Shown here one piece after another: positions 35,018 through 48,490 of a DNA stretch of 64,000 bases; the stretch's first letter is position 1, and each line of letters starts with the position of its first letter. The stretch lies in NCBI RefSeq assembly GCF_964204645.1, contig NC_134033.1, positions 16,376,655 through 16,440,654 on the forward strand, in the 5' to 3' direction. The notes beneath the pieces are model-generated. The model searched no databases. It saw nothing but the letters and a program-made list of their open reading frames with translations, and had not been told where the DNA came from. Both the position numbers and the translations under genes were made by a program. This stretch comes from Tubulanus polymorphus. Lineage: Eukaryota > Animalia > Nemertea.

Positions 35018-35059
<42 letters not shown>

Positions 35060-35645
35060 AGGGAGGGAGGGAGGGAGGGAGGGAGGGAGGGAGGGAGGGA
35101 GGGAGGGAGGGAGGGAGGGAGGGAGGGAGGGAGGGAGGGAGGGAGGGAGGGAGGGAGGGAGGGAGGGAGGGAGGGAGGGAGGGAGGGAGGGAGGGAGGGA
35201 GGGAGGGAGGGAGGGAGGGAGGGAGGGAGGGAGGGAGGGAGGGAGGGAGGGAGGGAGGGAGGGAGGGAGGGAGGGAGGGAGGGAGGGAGGGAGGGAGGGA
35301 GGGAGGGAGGGAGGGAGGGAGGGAGGGAGGGAGGGAGGGAGGGAGGGAGGGAGGGAGGGAGGGAGGGAGGGAGGGAGGGAGGGAGGGAGGGAGGGAGGGA
35401 GGGAGGGAGGGAGGGAGGGAGGGAGGGAGGGAGGGAGGGAGGGAGGGAGGGAGGGAGGGAGGGAGGGAGGGAGGGAGGGAGGGAGGGAGGGAGGGAGGGA
35501 GGGAGGGAGGGAGGGAGGGAGGGAGGGAGGGAGGGAGGGAGGGAGGGAGGGAGGGAGGGAGGGAGGGAGGGAGGGAGGGAGGGAGGGAGGGAGGGAGGGA
35601 GGGAGGGAGGGAGGGAGGGAGGGAGGGAGGGAGGGAGGGAGGGAG
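35018..35645. repeat. (GA)n followed by about 590 bp of perfect (GGGA)n
   Basis: Seen directly; generates the spurious REGG/PPSL ORFs. Confidence 0.97.
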
Positions 35646-36043
35646 CTTTTTTGCTGCAGTTCCATCTGAAAAATTAAGTTGAATAATTTGAATTTGAATG
35701 TAAGGAGTTTTAAGGCAGAAACTTTCAAATTGTGAGGAAGTGTCTGTATCACTTTCAAATCCCAATTACTGTAGACTCCTCATAAATGGGTACTGTTTAT
35801 CTCAGTAAGCCGTTAATTCAGTGTTTTGTAGGCAAGTTTTATCCTCAGCACTACCTTAACTTGGCTTCTAATTCAGTATCTGGCCTACCTAGTAATTGGG
35901 TAATGAAAAATCCTCGTCCCAACTTTACAGATTCAGGCATAGTCTAATGTACAACTACAAAAATTTCTAAATTTCCTATTTCTCAAAATTGAAGGAGTTT
36001 CAAGCACCTTTTAACAGCTTTTTCAGTTTTAAAGGAGTTTTGA

Positions 36044-36184
36044 AGGAATCAAGGAGACATGGGGACCCTGTTTAAAGGAATTAAGGAGACATGGGGACCC
36101 TGTTTAAAGGAATTAAGGAGACATGGGGACCCTGTTTAAAGGAATCAAGGAGACATGGGGACCCTGTTTAAAGGAATCAAGGAG
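36044..36184. repeat. About 33-bp tandem repeat, 4 copies, at the end of a dispersed repeat
   Basis: AAGGAATYAAGGAGACATGGGGACCCTGTTTA repeats. The adjacent 35700-36040 segment is homologous to 20310-20480 and, inverted, to 59470-60180. Confidence 0.8.
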
Positions 36185-38200: not shown

Positions 38201-41200
38201 ATGGTTTATAACAAGTAAGTTGTTAATTCTACGCAGTATAATAAACGACGCGATGAATTGGGTCGCGCATTCAAAAAAGAAGAACACTTGTCTCTAATGA
38301 ATGGTGTTAGTGTATGCAAGATAGTATGTAGATGAGTCGTGCTTCCTGGCGTCGAATCAATGAATAGGTTAACTCGATTTAATCATGCACTCTCTAGACA
38401 ATGATTTTATCAAAAGCACGCGCTTTATTGCTAGGCATACTATAGTGCATACTAGCTTTATCGAATACACTTGAACTTGAACTTATATTTATTGCGCCGT
38501 ATATAACATTTATACATAGGATAAGTCATGCGACAAATTTACAGGACAAAACATTGGAGAAGAGTACATAATACATGTAGCATAAAAACAACAGCTTATA
38601 CCAGAAACACCAGCTTGTTCCAGAATACACAGCCGATTAGTCAGGCATACTCACCCGATGAAGCTACTGTAACCCAGTGTAGCGAAAACTGATCATTTAT
38701 TAAGTTTTTAGCTTAGACATTTTCATGAAACTGAGTTGGGCATTATTCATTGCTTGCGTCCAAAGATGATCTCAAAACTAAGAGACTTGTATTAGATATG
38801 ACATAGATTGTCCTAGATCTCGACCTTGACTGACCCCTGGCTGGAATCCTGCGACACCTATACCCAGAAATCCCAACTATCAAACATGTTTTCTTGTTTT
38901 AGGTTTTTCGCAGTTCTGGTGGTTCTATTGGCGATACTGGTGTCACATGACGCGTTACCGCTTTACGACCGCAGCGCCTCTGCCGGTCACTTGCTACTAC
39001 AACAGTACCTCGACGCCAGTCGCAGCTTGAGCGATCACGTGATCGTCGATGGCGACGCCGAACAGCAGACGTCTACCAGTCACGTGGCCCGGCAACAACT
39101 GAGAGGTTTGGCAAAAAATATCTTTGGCCATCCTCGCTTGCCAGGTCTTGGATTGCCCGTCCGCCGAAGTTCACACCAATAACAACCCTGGCCGCAAATA
39201 TTTAATTGGGCGCACAGGGGTCCCGTTCAGCGCCCACCAGTCTATATATCAAGCCAGTCAGATGCGTTTTTGCAGGCACGACGTTTGCTCTACAAATACC
39301 ACGCATCTGATTGGCTAGATATATAGACTGGTGGGCGCTGAGCGGGGACCTGTCCGCGCAAGAAATCGCGGGGCAATGTAATAGACCAATGAAGGGTTTG
39401 CGGCCAGGGGTTTGTGTTGGCGTGAGCTCCAGTGGGCGGCAATCAAACCCTGGCAAGCGAGGATGATATTTGACGTGAATAACCGAAACATCATTTTTTT
39501 GCATCCAAAACTATTTATATAACCTGTAAGAATCCTGGGCCCGGTTTCATAGACCGAGTATCAAAGTTTTCCCTAGGGGTAAATCCTCAATCTGGGTGAC
39601 AAAACCACCATAGTTACAATGAGAAACCATGGTTATAACAGGCAAATTTCAGAATGTTCCCAGGGACTCTTTTTCTTCCACATCTATGAAACCCACCCCA
39701 GGGTCTTGTGTCCAAGACCATCGAATATTGTGAGTTGCCCCTATCTCATATTTGATTGGGATCTCTTAAAAACGTTTACCCGGGCGCGTTGGAAGCAATG
39801 TTTTATTGCTGCGGCCAAATGCCGATTTTGGACAGATTCTTAAAATTCTCAACAACGCCACTGCTACCGGCATATCAAATGGAATCTTTCTTATAAACTT
39901 CTCTCTTTTGGTTGGATAAGGGCAAGTTTTCCACTCTGAAACTCTGCAAAGAATGTACCTCGCTTATCAACAAATGTTCAAATGCGTCGCCTTAATTTCT
40001 TATACGCCTCTTAAATTGACTTTCCTTTTCACTGATCAAAAAATACCCCCGGATATGACACAAGAATTTTAAAAGTCGACCGCGGATCTGTCCCTGCATT
40101 TTATAACTATATTTGTTGAAGATGGCGACTTATTTTGCAGCCGTATCCAAAGCTTTATGGAGCGTCATCTGGTCTCGGTACACACGTGGCAATACGGAAG
40201 TGGGGACAATGAGTTGCGCCACCTGTCGGTTTCTGGTGATAGCAGTAAAGACCCTAATCGAACAGCAGCCGACGCGTGAGAAGTTAATAGAAGGACTGAT
40301 CAGTATCTGTAAAGTGCTCAAAATCGAAGATACTCGCGTTTGCGATAGTGTAATCAGAGAATTCCAGGTACGGGGAACGGCAGCTGAATATTCCACCCAT
40401 ATCCACAGTGCTCTGCGACGTTATATATGGATTCTTAGCGAGTCTACATAAAGTGTTTAGATATGTTTTCCTTCTTGGAATTCTTGGTTTTTTTTTCTAG
40501 AACGAAGTTTTATACGTTGTGTCGCATTTAGTGTTTGACGCGGATGAGTTGTGTGGACTGGTTGTCGGCGATTCGTGCGGTAAACCTTACAATCCAATGG
40601 ACATGTGGAACGTATCTTTACCTAACATACCGAAACCACCGATTCGTCCACCAGTTCCACCAAAGGTAACCTTTATGGGGAAAATGGGGCATCTTTTGAT
40701 AAAATATGTGGGTGCATCGCAACTGGGGCCATCTTTCGTTTAAAATATGTTGGTGCATCGCTACTGGGGGAGGGGGCATCTTTTGATAAGATATGTGGGT
40801 GCCTCGTTGCTTGGGGCATCTTTTGATAATGGGGGGGGGGGGGGGTGAGGGGCATATTTTGATGAAATAGGCCTATGTGGCTGAATCTGCAACATGGTCT
40901 GTCCGTTCAAATCTATAACACGAATAAAATGGCTCTAAAAGTTATGATTTCGCTAAAATGACCCCTAAAATCACGAAATATCTATTTTTCAAGCCTGGTT
41001 CACCTACATTGAGGATTCTACAGTTAGCTGATATACATTACGATCCTCTGTATAAAATAGGCAGCAATGCGAAATGCGGAGAACCACTTTGTTGCCACGA
41101 AGTGGACGGAATGGCTCGTAAGTATTGCTTGCAACACAGGAATAAATACCCCTGAAATTCTTGAATAAGAGTTGCATTCAACTCATTTAATTCACCCGTC

Positions 41201-44200
41201 TTCGGATATATTAACACATTACCCAAGTCATCACTATTTGTGAGTCCACATCTAAATATTTCTAATCTACTTTACTAAGTGTAGGTCGTCATGTGGATAA
41301 GTGTTATCACATTACCAGCTGAGATCATCAGTATTTCGAGTCCCAATTCTTATTTCCAATTTATACATTACTAACTGTGAGCCATAATTTTGAATCGTCA
41401 CATTACGGAAGTCACCTCTATTTTGAGTCTCAATTTGTATTTTTCAATTTTCAACTTACTAAATAGGCCATAATTTTGTTGAGTCGTCACACTACTGAAG
41501 TTGTCTCCTATTTTACATGTATTTAAAATTCAATTTACTAAGTGAAAGTCGTCATTTGGATTTCGGAATGACTACGAAAACTTCAAAAGTTCCAATGCAG
41601 GAACATGTGATATAATGTCCCGTTTTGTATTTAAGCTCCTGGTAAACCGGTGGCTGGCAAGTGGGGATATCCCGGATCGTGCGACTCGCCGATACAATTG
41701 ATCGAAAATCTGTTCGCTCACATTAACAAAACCGATAAAGTAAGAAATCGAAGAAAATAAATATTCATAATTTTGTCCAAACATATTGGACGACCACACG
41801 CACAGTGGGCTTCATAATTTTGTCCAAACATATTGGACGACCACACGCAGTGGGCTTCAAGATTGTATCCAAATACATTGAACGACAGCACAGTGTAGAC
41901 TACCCCCCCTCCCTGCCCCATCCCCATAACCAGGCACGGTTGGCTACCCCGCAAAGGAAGACACACAGTCAACACACAGTACACGGTCATAGAACAAAGC
42001 TAAGCCGTAAGCACGTGCGACGGCGATCAATGATGACGAATCTTCGTGAATTTCCACCCGTATATGTCATATATACCGCAAGCTCGGTGATGTAGTCACG
42101 TGAGGAGTGATAGTGAAATCCTTTAGATTTTGGCGAAGGCACCTCATAGGTGACTGACCCACTGACTAAATTGTCCGCTAGATGGCGAACTAGTCGAAGG
42201 TGGCTGCTCTTACAGCACTGGCATGTAGTGTAGAGCTGTCTTGAGTTGACCCTGGCTCCTTTTCTCTACAACTCTTACGTCAATAGAGACGATGTATTTG
42301 TTTTGTGGTGGTTTTTGTATTTGTTTTGTGGTGTTTTCTACGTAGTTTGATATGATCTATTGGACCGGTGATCTGCCCTCTCACAACGTCTGGAACCAGA
42401 CTCGTGCGCAACAAATCGCCGTATACAAAACACTGACGAAACTGTTCCTGAAATATTTCCCGGGAGTACCGATATACGGGGCTTTAGGAAACCACGAGAG
42501 CGCACCTGTAAACAGGTACGTAGGAATGGCATGTTGAAAGTGTGATTGGATCCAGGACCCAATATTCTAACGGCTTAAACGGCTCTAACAGCTTATCTTA
42601 CCTCAAAATGTGGAACTGGATCCTGAGTTCAGAGTTAACTCTAGCTCACAACTTTGTAACTGGAATTAAATAACTGGATCCTGAGTTCAAAACTGTGAAT
42701 TGAGTTTTGACTCAGATTAACTCATTGGAAATTAACTAATTTTAACTCAGAGTGATCACTAACTCACGACCGTGGAACTACTGGCCTCTGGATCCTGGAG
42801 TTCAGTGTTAACTCACAACTGTGGAACTGGATCCTGAGTTCTGGGTTAACTCTAACTCACCGATTGTGGAACTTAATCCCCGTGCTAGCCCCCGTGCCAT
42901 TAACCTCTCTGCGTAACTATCTCATTCCAGTTTTCCTCCGCCGTTTATAACCGGGGACAACTCGATTCGATGGTTGTACAGCGAAATCGACCAAAGCTGG
43001 AGTCATTGGTTACTTGATTCGACCAGACGAACCATCCTCTAGTAAGTTTAACCCTCTAGCTACATAACTATCAGTCAGAAAAAATGCCGATTTTCACAGC
43101 ACCAAACAGTCTTGGATTATCATTGAATTCTGAGTTATTTTCAGCGGTGGTTATTATACGGCTTTGGTGAAACCCGGATTACGAGTGGTGTCGTTAAACA
43201 TGAATTACTGTAACAATCAGAACTGGTGGTTATTGCTGAATTCTACAGACCCGGCTCAAGAATTACAGTGGTTAGTCGATGTATTGCAACACGCCGAGAA
43301 TAACCACGAAAAGGTATTTCACAGCGGTGCATCCTTCATCGGCGGGGATTCAAACCTGATGGCATCGTGAGACGCTGCCACGTTCCTCCCTCGGTAGGGA
43401 TTCGAACCTGATGGCTTCGTCAAACTCTCGGCAGGGGTTCAATAGATTCAAATCCCTGTCACGAAAGCTGCATTACAGATTGTCACCTTGACCTTTTGGA
43501 TCTGTGTATTATCTGTGTAAAAGTAAAATACGTATAAGTAGTTGTTTTATTCTGTAGGTTCATATCATAGGCCATATTCCGAATGGGAAGTGGGATTGCA
43601 TGAAACCATGGAGTTGGAACTATTATAACATCATAAACAGGTATTTGAATAAATTCACCTTTAATAATGTTAGCGAACGAAATACAACTCGAACATTATA
43701 GAATCTCAACTGTGCATCTACAGCAGTCCTAACGCTACCGAGTTTCTGATTCTCAACTCTGCAACTACAGCAGTCCAAACGCTACCGAGTTCCCTGATTC
43801 TCAACTCGGTAGAATATTTCATTCGTCCTTCACGTTAAGTAAATTTCCTTGCTATAAAAATGTTGTATCTTTGTCATTTATGATATCAGAAATAAAAGAA
43901 CGATATTTTACGGTGTAGACATTATCATGAATGTTGAATTCATTCTGTGATATAAAGAACTGAATATATGAATCACAATGGAAGCTCGTGGGTCGGTTTG
44001 AAATCTAGCCAACCTTCGAAATTCTATTTATATAGAAAACATATAACCGAATTTCAATTCTAGCGGCACGCGTTTTTACGAGCAGTTTCCAGCCGCTGGA
44101 CAAAAAAGCTTTCGCATGCAATAGCTGGAAATTGCCGCTGGTAGCTGGAAACCGCTCCCGCAGTTTGGCCGTTTTCACGAGCGTTTTTGGTGGCAGAGCT

Positions 44201-47200
44201 GGAAACCGCTGTGCTAAGCATTTTTTTCGAGAGGTTTCAAGCCAGCAATTTCCAGCTGAGAAATTTTGCAGTAGCTTTTTCCAGCTGCCGGGTTTTCCAG
44301 CTCGGGTCCAATGGTTCGGTTGTGTTTTCACGAGTGGCAGCTGGAAACCGCTCGTTAAAACTAGCCTTAACTAACGAACCTACTAAATTCGAGTAGCAAA
44401 AACTCGCACTTTTGATAAAATCTTATTAACCCTACGCTTTGCAGTAAGCCTCACCCATAAAACTCAGATAAGGCCAACTCGGAATTTTTATCTAACTCAG
44501 ACAACAAACGAAATCGTTTTTTTCTGACTGGCCAACGCATTTTCCTATCAAGGTTTAATTTTACCACCGGTGCGGCGAGGTTTACTGTAGTATTTGTCTT
44601 AACGTTTTACCGCTTCGACATTAGGTTAACGAAAGCTCTTCTAACGACTCTCCTTATTTTCATGAAAATGTCTAAACCTCGTCACATTTTCAGATACGAG
44701 AGCGTCGTCGGCGCTCAGTTCTTCGGCCACACGCATCGCGATGAATTCGAGATATTCTACGATTTGTCGAATAAATCGCGAGCGTTGAATATCGCTTACA
44801 TATCGCCAAGTGTGACTACGTTACCGCGGCTGTTTCCAGGGTATCGTATTTACACCGTCGATCGACAGCCGTCTGCCATGGTACGTCACGACACCGCACC
44901 GCACCACGTGACCTATTATAGTCAGCGCACGCGTTCAACCAATCAGCATTCGGCATTAACTTCACACAGGCGCATGCGTGAAGCCCACGCTCTCTCACTC
45001 TATCTAGCTTTGTGTTTTGTTTTGGTGATAGGTTATATCAGTGGACTATAAAACGAATATTCGTTTTAAATGTTTAATTAAGACTAAAAGAATCGATACC
45101 TTGTTTCTCCGCTCTACTGAGCTTTAAAGTTGACCCGACCGGCCGCCTATCTACCCTGTATATTACTATTTTAAAAATGGTGATCAATTTTACCATAACA
45201 GACCCGGCCGCTATAGAAATGAGCTGATTACAAATTCCATTACATTTTACAAAAAATAGCCCGCTGCGAAGAAACAAGGTATCATTTTTGTTTAGCCTCA
45301 TGATTAGTTTGTTTTTCACACAGTGTGTGCTACACTTTTTTGACGGACAATCAAAATGCACATTTTAACTTGACAAAATGCACATTTAACCATTCATAGT
45401 CCATGATTTGATTATCATAGATTGTCTAAATTAGGCACGGGCCAAAATCGTCTCCGAGCGATCGAGGCTTATGTCCACTGGTAAATGAACCCTAACCCAA
45501 CAGTATTAAGAGAATCAAACAACAATGATTAATAATATAAAGTTCGAAAATGTCTCCCTAAACTTGTATAGTTCATTCAAAGTCTCGACCATCCTAATTA
45601 TAGTCACATCTTCAGGAAAACTGTATTCCTTGAACTAGTGTAGTTTATTCAACGTTTCGACCATATCCTAATAGTCATCTTCAGGAATACTGTATTCCTT
45701 GAGCTAGTGTAGTTTATTCAACGTTTCGACTATATCCTAATAGTCATCTTCAGGAATACTGTATTCCTTGAACTAGTGTAGTTTATTCAACGTTTCGACT
45801 ATATCCTAATAGTCATCTTCAGGAATACTGTATTCCTTGAGCTAGTGTAGTTTATTCGACGTTTCGACTATATCCTAATAGTCATCTTCAGGAATACTGT
45901 ATTCCTTGAGCTAGTAGTTCATTCAACGACTATATCCTAATAGTCACATCTTCAGGAAAATTGTATTCCTTGAGCTAGTGTAGTTTATTCAACGTTTCGA
46001 CTATATCCTAATAGTCATCTTCAGGAATACTGTATTCCTTGAGCTAGTAGTTCATTCAACGACTATATCCTAATAGTCACATCTTCAGGAAAATTGTATT
46101 CCTTGAGCTAGTGTAGTTTATTCAACGTTTCGACTTTTTCCTGAAAGTCATCTTTAGGAATACTGTATTCCTTGAGCTAGTGTAGTTTATTCAACGTTTC
46201 GACTATATCCTAATAGTCATCTTCAGGAATACTGTATTCCTTGAGCTAGTGTAGTTTATTCAACGTTTCGACCATATCCTGATAGTCATCTTCAGGAATA
46301 CTGTATTCCTTGAACTAGTGTAGTTTATTCAACGTTTCGACTTTACCCAGCTCAGTCATTCTCGAGAACACTGAATTTTTCGTCATTATTGTGGGATTCT
46401 CTTCATATCTGTATCGTCACAACACGGATATATTGGCTTATCTATGGTTAACTCTAAGCCACCTTTCGAGCAACTGGCCCTGGGTTTATCTATACTGGTA
46501 GATTTTAGAATGGTTGCGGGGTTCTTCTATTGGCACAACTGAGAACCTTTAGATTCCTGTACAAATGTCCTGCATGCACCACTCTCTATATCCTACCTAT
46601 ATTTCCAGATATGAAGGCACGGTAGCCGGTCAATTTTTCGGTCACACGCACAAAGACGAATTCGAAATATTCTACGATCAAAATGACGTCAGACGAGCGA
46701 ATAATATAGTTTTTATATCGCCCAGTATCACCCCTTTTACTGCGACCCCTAATTATACTCTTAACTCCGGGTATCGCATTTATACCGTGGATAATACAAT
46801 ACGAAAGGTAAATAACGATGACCCAACTAACATTTATTTACAGTAAACCTCGCCCTAACCTCGGACAAACCGGGACCGGTGGAAAAATTGATCCGGGGTT
46901 AGTGAAGACAGCGTTAATGATCGGAAGATACGTTTATGAAGTTGGTGAAACATCAAAATGTGATGTTTCAGTCCGAGTTTGAGACGAACGTCGAAAATTG
47001 ATTTCATAAGGCGAGGTTTACTGTTGATACGTCTAACTCATCCTCGCTTGCCAGGGTTTGATTGCCTCTCGCCGAGCCCATACCCTGGCCGCAGACCCTT
47101 CATTGGTATATTACATCGCCCAAGATTTCACGAGTGGACAGGTCACCGCTAAGCGGCCACCAGTCCATACGTCTAGCCATTCAGATGCGTTGTTTTCACC

Positions 47201-47758
47201 GGCAGATACGCTCTACCAATTTGGTCGACAACTGTACGTAATTCGTGTTTCTGAATCAGAAAACCAAAATGTCCGTTACATCATTTCAGGATGTTTTGGA
47301 TCATGAAACGTATATATTGAACATCACTGAAGCGAATATCTCCAACGACCCTAAATGGGTCCTCGAATACAAAGCTAAGGTAAGCGTCGCTACAAAATGG
47401 AGGATTCGATGTTTTAACCGTATTCAAATTCTAGATTTATGTCGATATTCGTCCTCGACTACTTCTTTATAGGACGCTTACGGTATGACATCATTGTACC
47501 CACGTGACTGGGATAAACTCGTGCAGCGAATGAAAACGGACGACGAATCGTGGAATAAATTCCAAACGTAACGTTTTAAAACACCGATCAGGTTCGAATC
47601 CCAGCGTGTGTAAAGTCACGAATTTTTTTTTCACATTTTGCAGATACTACGTGAAGTCTTCGGATTCGTCAGCTCGATGCGAGGGCAGCGCCTGTCGACA
47701 CAGCATGCTATGTGCTTTACAGACTGGACGGTCACACGATCAAACGTTCTGTAACTAA
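38201..47758 (+). CDS. SMPD1: Acid sphingomyelinase (signal peptide, saposin B, Pro-rich linker, metallophosphoesterase), 618 or 622 aa depending on exon choice
   Basis: Exons: 38201-38214, 38903-39105, 40141-40367, 40501-40665, 40994-41117, 41636-41739, 42346-42515, 42931-43041, 43145-43313, 43558-43640, [44694-44880 or 46609-46807], 47290-47379, 47473-47567, 47644-47758. All phases are consistent. Six saposin cysteines, PKPP linker and metal-ligand motifs DIHYD, TGD, GNHE, GHIP and GHTH are present. An alternative in-frame ATG lies at 38886. Confidence 0.95.
39129..39465. mobile_element. Foldback MITE, palindromic over most of its length
   Basis: CATCCTCGCTTGCCAGG / CCTGGCAAGCGAGGATG termini with long imperfect arms. 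A half copy lies at 47039-47190. Confidence 0.8.
44072..44361. mobile_element. MITE with internal AGCTGGAAA repeats
   Basis: Imperfect TIRs GTTTTTACGAGCAGTTTCCAGC / GCTGGAAACCGCTCGTTAAAAC. Confidence 0.65.
44694..44880 (+). CDS. SMPD1: SMPD1 mutually exclusive exon A
   Basis: ttttcAG acceptor and GTACGT donor, 187 nt: [62 protein letters not shown]. Confidence 0.85.
45569..46370 (-). ncRNA. Tandem array (69-bp unit, about 12 copies) of minimal type I hammerhead ribozymes, Penelope-like
   Basis: The minus-strand unit reads UAUUC-CUGAAGA-U-GACUA-uuaggaua-UAGUC-GAAA-CG-UU(or UC)-GAAUA. This gives stem I UAUUC/GAAUA, the CUGANGA and GAAA cores, a 5-bp stem II, a palindromic ACGU stem III and a GUU/GUC cleavage triplet. 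Intact copies: 45646-45689, 45715-45758, 45784-45827, 45853-45896 (GUC), 45986-46029, 46188-46231, 46257-46300. Confidence 0.75.
46609..46807 (+). CDS. SMPD1: SMPD1 mutually exclusive exon B
   Basis: tttccAG acceptor and GTAAAT donor, 199 nt: [66 protein letters not shown]. Confidence 0.85.
46841..47023. mobile_element. Tc1/mariner-type MITE
   Basis: TIRs CAGTAAACCTCGCC / GGCGAGGTTTACTG. A related element lies at 44442-44587. Confidence 0.7.
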
Positions 47759-48490
47759 GCAACCTCGAGACGTCCATTGCCGGAGAACTGGGTCAATGAT
47801 CTTTTTTAGAAATAGTTTGATTATGTCTTTCATATCACATCATTAAGGAAAAATAAATTTCGTTTGACAAATTATGGATTTTTTTGACTGACTCATCCGA
47901 TACAAACGATTATCCGATTTACGTGTTTCGTCTACCAAACTGATCCAGGGGTATCTGACCTTTTTACTATAACTGCAACGTCAATAATTGTCTGACTGGC
48001 TCCACCTGGCGGATAAGTAACGTTCCCATCGTCGTAAAAGAAACGGCAGTAGAACAAATGCACAAACACTGATTTGTTTATAACATTGAATTTATTTTCA
48101 TTGCTACAGTTTATAAACTAGTCGCTAGGTGGCACGATGTACGCTATTTATCCAGATCAGATTTTGATATTTCATTCAAATACATCTCACACTACAGAAG
48201 CAAGTGTTAATATATATATTCTAGTAATAATTCATATATTTCAACGAGATGAGTAGTACTTTAAATGTTAACTATTTATTTCATTTGACTTTCGCTATAA
48301 GTTTCATCACGGGTGAATGATGAATCCACTATTCTCTAGTAGAGGAGAGCTCGTGTATCGAATAAACTAGTTAATCTATAAAGTACTATCCATCTCGTAT
48401 TTATTCTATACCCGGTTATCACGACTCCTCTTCTCACGTATTTCATACTAATCGATTGTTCCAAAATGGCTTATATCATATATCATTCTG

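Follow-up and report, generated by a model that had tools for sequence, protein, structure and literature searches.

A probable either-or exon pair at the active site of the acid sphingomyelinase of the nemertean Tubulanus polymorphus

Can a single gene supply two acid sphingomyelinases that differ at the rim of the substrate pocket? Acid sphingomyelinase (ASM), whose human gene is SMPD1, is a well-studied enzyme, known for its part in Niemann-Pick disease and in ceramide signalling. The question is raised by a stretch of 64,000 nt from the palaeonemertean ribbon worm Tubulanus polymorphus (assembly GCF_964204645.1, contig NC_134033.1, positions 16,376,655 to 16,440,654 of the forward strand; here termed the window), in which the ASM gene carries two tandem copies, A and B, of its exon 10. 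An original prediction, made from the letters of the window, held that only one of the two exons can be used at a time and that splicing may thereby switch substrate preference. On balance, we consider it probable that an old tandem duplication of exon 10 within this single ASM gene gave rise to a mutually exclusive exon pair of which both members are used.

Two copies of exon 10 in one acid sphingomyelinase gene

The anatomy of the exon pair agrees in every detail, lengths included (Table 1), with what had been predicted: The two exons are paralogous, free of stops, of a 3n+1 length and in equal phase, each supplying the third base of a split Arg codon, and their splice sites are intact. Exon A is flanked by ...ttttcag upstream and gtacgt downstream, exon B by ...tttccag and gtaaat, and their common partners are the donor of exon 9 at 43640 (CAG/gtattt) and the acceptor of exon 11 at 47290 (tttcag/GAT). 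Judged against the constitutive exons of the gene, exon A has an acceptor and a donor of equal quality. The encoded proteins are identical at 36 of 61 positions (59%; E = 6e-24 by BLASTP), with Y-E..., GHTH, ISPS-x-T and GYRIYTVD encoded by A and B alike; DNA similarity between the exons ends a few bases beyond the splice sites, and aligned codons are about 59% identical.

The reading frame treats the two copies as alternatives. When A and B are joined in one mRNA, exon B is read as Ile-stop, with the stop at codon 2, and in an mRNA that lacks both, exon 11 encodes MFWIMKRIY-stop, with the stop about 10 codons in. Because mRNAs with both exons and mRNAs with neither thus run into early stops, as had been foreseen, only those that contain a single copy are productive, and the other two forms would be removed by nonsense-mediated decay.

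Table 1. Coordinates of the ASM gene, its exon pair and a nearby transposon (positions within the window)
Feature	Coordinates	Strand	Remarks
Acid sphingomyelinase (SMPD1-type) gene	38901..47755	+	13 coding exons in RefSeq model XP_074657493.1, plus unannotated exon A
Constitutive exon 9	43558..43640	+	VHIIGHIP..., with zinc-ligand His (= human H425); ends with AG of split Arg codon
Exon 10A	44694..44880	+	187 nt = 1 + 62 codons; GHTH; outside the RefSeq model
Intron between alternative exons	44881..46608	+	1,728 nt; holds 69-bp satellite
Exon 10B	46609..46807	+	199 nt = 1 + 66 codons; GHTH; used in the RefSeq protein
Small inverted-repeat transposon (MITE)	46835..47029		Just downstream of exon B; inverted repeats I4, I6, I15
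Constitutive exon 11	47290..47379	+	Start of the ASMase C-terminal domain

The gene itself is, judged from its sequence, an ASM of the SMPD1 type, with the calcineurin-like di-zinc phosphoesterase core and its GHTH motif, the saposin domain and the ASMase C-terminal domain (PF19272) all present and hydrolysis of sphingomyelin predicted. Full-length ASM relatives place about 13 exons at 38.9-47.8 kb on the + strand, and the RefSeq protein XP_074657493.1 ('sphingomyelin phosphodiesterase-like [Tubulanus polymorphus]', 622 aa, carrying PF00149 and PF19272) matches the window exon by exon at 95-100% identity (tblastn). The AlphaFold2 model of this protein, which represents the B form (mean predicted local distance difference test score, pLDDT, 83.8), has mouse and human ASM as its best structural matches (5FIC, 5I81; TMt 0.89-0.90, 44-45% identity) and SMPDL3A and SMPDL3B as its second-best. 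Window positions 40206-40367 align with the Cys-rich saposin part of full-length ASMs, and residues 98-170 of the model form a saposin-type helical bundle; the best matches of the model are to full-length ASM in the open form. Exon 11 alone gives a weak match to PF19272 (E = 9e-4); a search of the T. polymorphus genome with the PF19272 profile produced no match anywhere, not even at the ASM gene itself. No second copy of any other ASM exon was detected in the window by tblastn of XP_074657493.1. A profile of exons A and B, run against the entire 268-Mb assembly, hits two places only, both of them this exon pair, so T. polymorphus has one gene with this exon.

The two copies have long been separate. 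By codon position, their identity is 0.67 at first, 0.70 at second and 0.39 at third positions, the last corresponding to a Jukes-Cantor distance of 1.26, and different codons are used at 16 of the 36 identical residues. Maximum likelihood gives 0.37 nonsynonymous substitutions per site (dN) between A and B and a saturated synonymous estimate (dS), and the NG86, LWL85 and YN00 methods return no dS estimate, synonymous sites being saturated; from this saturation we conclude that the duplication is old. Alignment with 50 other animal ASM exons yields 25 columns that are at least 80% conserved, of which A has kept 23 and B 22. In simulated neutral drift along one branch (0.63 substitutions per site, taken from the third-position distance), 9% of copies stayed free of stops and 29% of residues were unchanged. 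Since silent sites are saturated yet nearly all of the conserved residues are kept in A and in B, the sequences indicate that neither copy drifted neutrally for most of its history and that both experienced long purifying selection. The proposed comparison of dN with dS between the exons has thus been carried out, and the suggestion that both copies are under selection is upheld by it.

Differences at the pocket rim

What would a choice between A and B change in the enzyme? The two products would have all other exons in common, among them those for the saposin domain, for the C-terminal domain and for the remaining zinc ligands, and would be set apart by a stretch of 62 or 66 residues with two zinc-ligand His (both kept) and the ceramide-side strand-loop-strand of the pocket. 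By alignment, the exon maps to human ASM from about residue 447 up to the residues just before VLDHET; the prediction that each copy encodes the GHTH zinc motif together with a pocket loop is borne out, in that both span the equivalents of human H457, H459 and Y488 (PMC5062611). In the human enzyme, H457 and H459 are axial zinc ligands, H425 is a ligand of Zn1, and Y488 stacks on H282, within 7 A of the zincs and placed to hydrogen-bond substrate (PMC5062611); H280 of the mouse enzyme, the equivalent of human H282, is the likely proton donor (PMC4961792).

Both Tubulanus exons retain GHTH and the Arg of GYR. The position of Y488, which is Tyr, Phe or Trp in 299 of 310 family sequences, is Leu in A and Phe in B. 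The loop from S-V-T to Y-R, eight residues long in 304 of the 310, has 8 residues in A and 13 in B, which is the sole sequence of that length among the family sequences compared. Exon A aligns without gaps to human and mouse ASM, confirming that its loop has the vertebrate length, and exon B requires a 5-residue insertion after the Phe. In the AlphaFold2 model, this insertion is a small hairpin (strands 500-503 and 506-508; block pLDDT about 81, the core being otherwise very confident). Exon A further has Phe for the Asn of NPGY (FPGY) and Val for the invariant Thr of Y-E-x-T, and exon B has Ser for the Pro of NPGY (NSGY). The translations also contain N-glycosylation sequons, N-K-S in A and N-Y-T within the insertion in B, and glycans would probably sit at different places in the two forms. 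Isoform A would accordingly combine the standard loop with Leu where nearly all relatives are aromatic and with Phe in place of the NPGY Asn, and isoform B would retain an aromatic residue and add a hairpin and a new sequon; one worm gene would in this way do what other animals do with gene duplicates, yielding two isozymes that are unlike at the pocket rim.

The original prediction also held that the loop of exon B recalls SMPDL3-type phosphodiesterases. That likeness holds for the loop, since mouse SMPDL3B and exon B alike have T-P-aromatic followed by a longer loop, but the rest of the exon is ASM-like, and many ordinary ASMs of invertebrates have 'TP' as well. Exon B reaches 58.6 bits with ASM, 37.7 with SMPDL3B and 33.8 with SMPDL3A, and exon A reaches 63 bits with ASM and 32 with SMPDL3B; alignments of both exons to the ASM chains 5I81, 5FI9 and 5HQN have E values between 1e-13 and 1e-16. 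In a structure comparison, the model of the whole B isoform matches ASM with E = 4e-60 and SMPDL3A with E = 9e-37. We therefore do not class exon B as an exon of SMPDL3 type, as scores and fold favour ASM and the likeness is confined to loop length and T-P-aromatic, and a possible account of that likeness is convergence in loop length, not membership. Vertebrate SMPD1, SMPDL3A and SMPDL3B offer a parallel, in that one fold with a common di-zinc site and differing loops acts on different substrates, SMPDL3A hydrolysing nucleotides and not sphingomyelin (PMC4961792). However, SMPDL3A and SMPDL3B are separate genes that lack a saposin domain, and both Tubulanus exons are clearly of ASM type.

The same exon in other animals

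Among 1.84 billion representatives searched with a profile, a single protein matched the exon twice; it comes from the amphipod crustacean Hyalella azteca (GCA_000764305.4). Its 147-aa gene model, nested on JQDR03010282.1 (6001-8722) within a 1113-aa gene model, strings together two tandem copies of the exon and in all likelihood arose as an artefact of annotating an either-or pair. The copies measure 193 and 187 nt, each of 3n+1 length and with AG/GT sites, and are separated by 1.35 kb. In the mantis shrimp Oratosquilla oratoria, exactly this exon is what sets apart the RefSeq isoforms X1 (XP_076061025.1; 805 aa) and X2 (XP_076061026.1; 804 aa); its copies, of 193 and 190 nt, have 2.8 kb between them. 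The woodlouse Armadillidium nasatum has two intact 3n+1 copies of 193 and 178 nt, and here as in Hyalella the second copy is unannotated. A single copy is present in Penaeus monodon, Daphnia pulicaria and the nemertean Lineus longissimus. The ASM gene model of the rotifer Brachionus calyciflorus (1030 aa), which far exceeds its relatives in length and has an unusually high score against XP_074657493.1 (865 bits at 43% identity), may be the product of a fusion or a duplication in the model.

The crustacean pairs resemble that of Tubulanus in concerning the same exon of the same gene, in tandem, of 3n+1 length and with identical boundaries, the exon being preceded by a split Arg codon and ending before V/L-x-DHET in worm and crustaceans alike. 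They belong to another phylum, however, and, unlike the Tubulanus exons, both of their copies keep Tyr at the place of Y488 and a loop of 8 residues, the differences between copies falling in surface segments.

Tubulanus A and B share a short tail (5-6 residues, against 9 in others) and YRIYTVD, and in a FastTree phylogeny of a 60-residue alignment they fall into a small group with two other sequences, apart from both crustacean types; support for this group is unstable, at 0.965 in one alignment and 0.05-0.55 in another. Because A and B share these derived traits and group together, if weakly, a duplication that took place independently in the worm, once its lineage had separated from that of Lineus, appears the likelier history, though it is not proven. 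In the short tree, the closest relatives of Tubulanus A and B are the exon-10 parts of Logan contigs of SRR33369598 and SRR19053155, respectively, which are AT-rich and genomic, with very short introns and with ASM exons 9 to 11 fused.

The crustacean pairs also invite a bolder view, according to which the exon with the zinc ligands and ceramide-side loop of ASM is a recurrent hot spot of either-or duplication, hit independently in the worm and in Malacostraca, and the swap in the worm retunes substrate choice. Taken as a whole, we regard this view as doubtful.

Exon use, exclusivity and meaning

Are both exons used? Several observations weigh against it. The sole RefSeq protein contains B and not A, has no isoform label in its name and belongs to a 90% cluster of one member. 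An open reading frame look-up and a word search with exon A brought up no Tubulanus transcript, a result of little weight given that records of the species itself were possibly outside the searched set; the word search gave two matches only (68% identity), in short genomic contigs with exons 9-11 fused, which are silent on splicing. Exon A has lost three highly conserved residues (the Thr of YE.T, the aromatic at Y488 and the Asn of NPGY), and these losses could reflect recent relaxation instead of specialisation. Moreover, the pair is not seen in another nemertean: Absence of an exon from relatives had been named in advance as a finding that would speak against the prediction, and for L. longissimus, a distant nemertean, absence is what was found.

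The choice of B in the RefSeq protein and the radical changes at conserved positions of A, as well as a stronger polypyrimidine tract in B (0.76 vs 0.65 in A), would be explained if exon A were a recently silenced relic that is intact for lack of time, in a gene that makes the B form only. Yet since the old duplication A has kept its conserved residues, its zinc motif, its frame and both splice sites; it is closer than B to the ASMs of other animals (mean identity 58.9% against 55.4%, A being closer in 38 of 50 comparisons); and an A-like loop (T-T-x-P-x-hydrophobic-F-P-G-Y) exists elsewhere as the only version, in one genomic contig (P0382). Thus, we think it unlikely that A is a relic. Because A is the copy more similar to the ASM of other species, the RefSeq choice of B may have been guided by RNA data that support this exon. 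On the favoured reading, in which both exons are used, B would be at least the commonly expressed form, and A would be used in some tissue, stage or condition.

It could also be that both exons are used without any change in substrate choice, the isoforms differing in expression domain, glycosylation, stability, pH profile or sorting (lysosomal or secreted) or splitting an ancestral expression pattern between them. The retention of all catalytic and metal-binding residues in both exons, their swapped sequons and the crustacean pairs, which keep Tyr at the Y488 place and differ in surface segments, all accord with such an arrangement. However, what differs most between the Tubulanus exons is the loop whose length is otherwise the least variable and the residue packing against the His that is the candidate proton donor, and we judge isoforms of unchanged substrate choice to be quite improbable. 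That the exon pair is an assembly or haplotype artefact, for which we found nothing in favour, is effectively refuted by the divergence of the copies alone, in protein and in codons, and is further opposed by their unequal lengths, their spacing of 1.7 kb within one intron-exon frame and the same design in three crustacean assemblies.

Exclusivity could be enforced in several ways. Steric hindrance is not at play, because the introns across the region are all GT-AG and the one between A and B has ample length (Table 1), and no dedicated docking/selector RNA pairing was found among the inverted repeats around the exon pair. A perfect 16-nt complement between 44574-44589, before A, and 46839-46854, after B, was considered as a docking/selector device and rejected, because the motif, which recurs exactly 96 times genome-wide, is the terminus of a small transposon. 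The copy of this transposon (MITE) downstream of exon B is matched by an inverted fragment of its end at 44553-44590 (delimited by eye), about 100 nt upstream of exon A. Its 15-mer end motif, GGCGAGGTTTACTGT, occurs three times in the window and 96 times exactly in the genome (none for the reversed control), where it often forms inverted pairs about 150-175 nt apart. The MITE copy after B and the inverted fragment before A could pair in the pre-mRNA and loop out both exons. The only enforcement that we could demonstrate is the reading frame, with nonsense-mediated decay expected to follow.

Other repeats are found around the exon pair. The 69-bp satellite in the intron between A and B extends over 45607-46342 (10.8 copies, 89% match); Rfam detected no significant family over 43000-48000 and no hammerhead there at E <= 0.01, and no Rfam hammerhead was found in the satellite (45550-46400) when the threshold was relaxed to E <= 10. 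Direct and inverted copies of AGCTGGAAACCGCT-like motifs are densely clustered at 44070-44360, in the intron upstream of exon A (inverted repeats I2, I5 and I7-I14), and a 47-nt tandem repeat (2.2 copies) lies at 43704-43807, just past the exon 9 donor. At a distance from the exon pair, a (GAGG)n microsatellite of about 157 units at 35019-35645, beside which a 32-nt tandem repeat (4.6 copies) lies at 36039-36184, accounts for a spike in GC skew (0.49) in the 34-36 kb bin.

Either-or exon pairs are a well-known kind of gene structure; of interest here are the unusual position of the differences and the crustacean parallels. Work by Kondrashov and Koonin in 2001 and by Letunic and colleagues in 2002 is said to have traced mutually exclusive exons to tandem exon duplication. 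The Tubulanus pair resembles the class of tandem-duplicated exons that are kept exclusive by frame and nonsense-mediated decay, in that the exons are adjacent, homologous, of 3n+1 length and in the same phase and that double inclusion or skipping leads to an early stop; it differs from other members of the mutually exclusive class in that neither docking/selector pairing nor a steric constraint was found and that exon A is known from the genome alone. Human SMPD1 splice variants, which reportedly arise by skipping or by cryptic sites, are said to be catalytically inactive with dominant-negative effects, and to our knowledge the known splice variants of ASM are such inactive forms, not alternative active sites. 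Those variants (PMC3338701) and the proposed Tubulanus forms have alternative splicing of the same enzyme in common, but in Tubulanus a homologous cassette would be exchanged with all catalytic residues retained in either form. A search of the full-text literature for mutually exclusive exons in sphingomyelinase or SMPD1 returned nothing relevant.

The cassette pair represents a natural experiment on the function of a loop that is otherwise invariant in length, with the catalytic residues kept and the residue that packs on the proton-donor His changed. The doubling of this exon in three orders of crustaceans, with two isoforms annotated in one of them, suggests a general and undescribed way of diversifying ASM. 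Were the bolder, doubtful view correct, splicing in Tubulanus would act as an isozyme switch for a lysosomal lipid hydrolase, retuning which phosphosphingolipid or other phosphodiester is cleaved.

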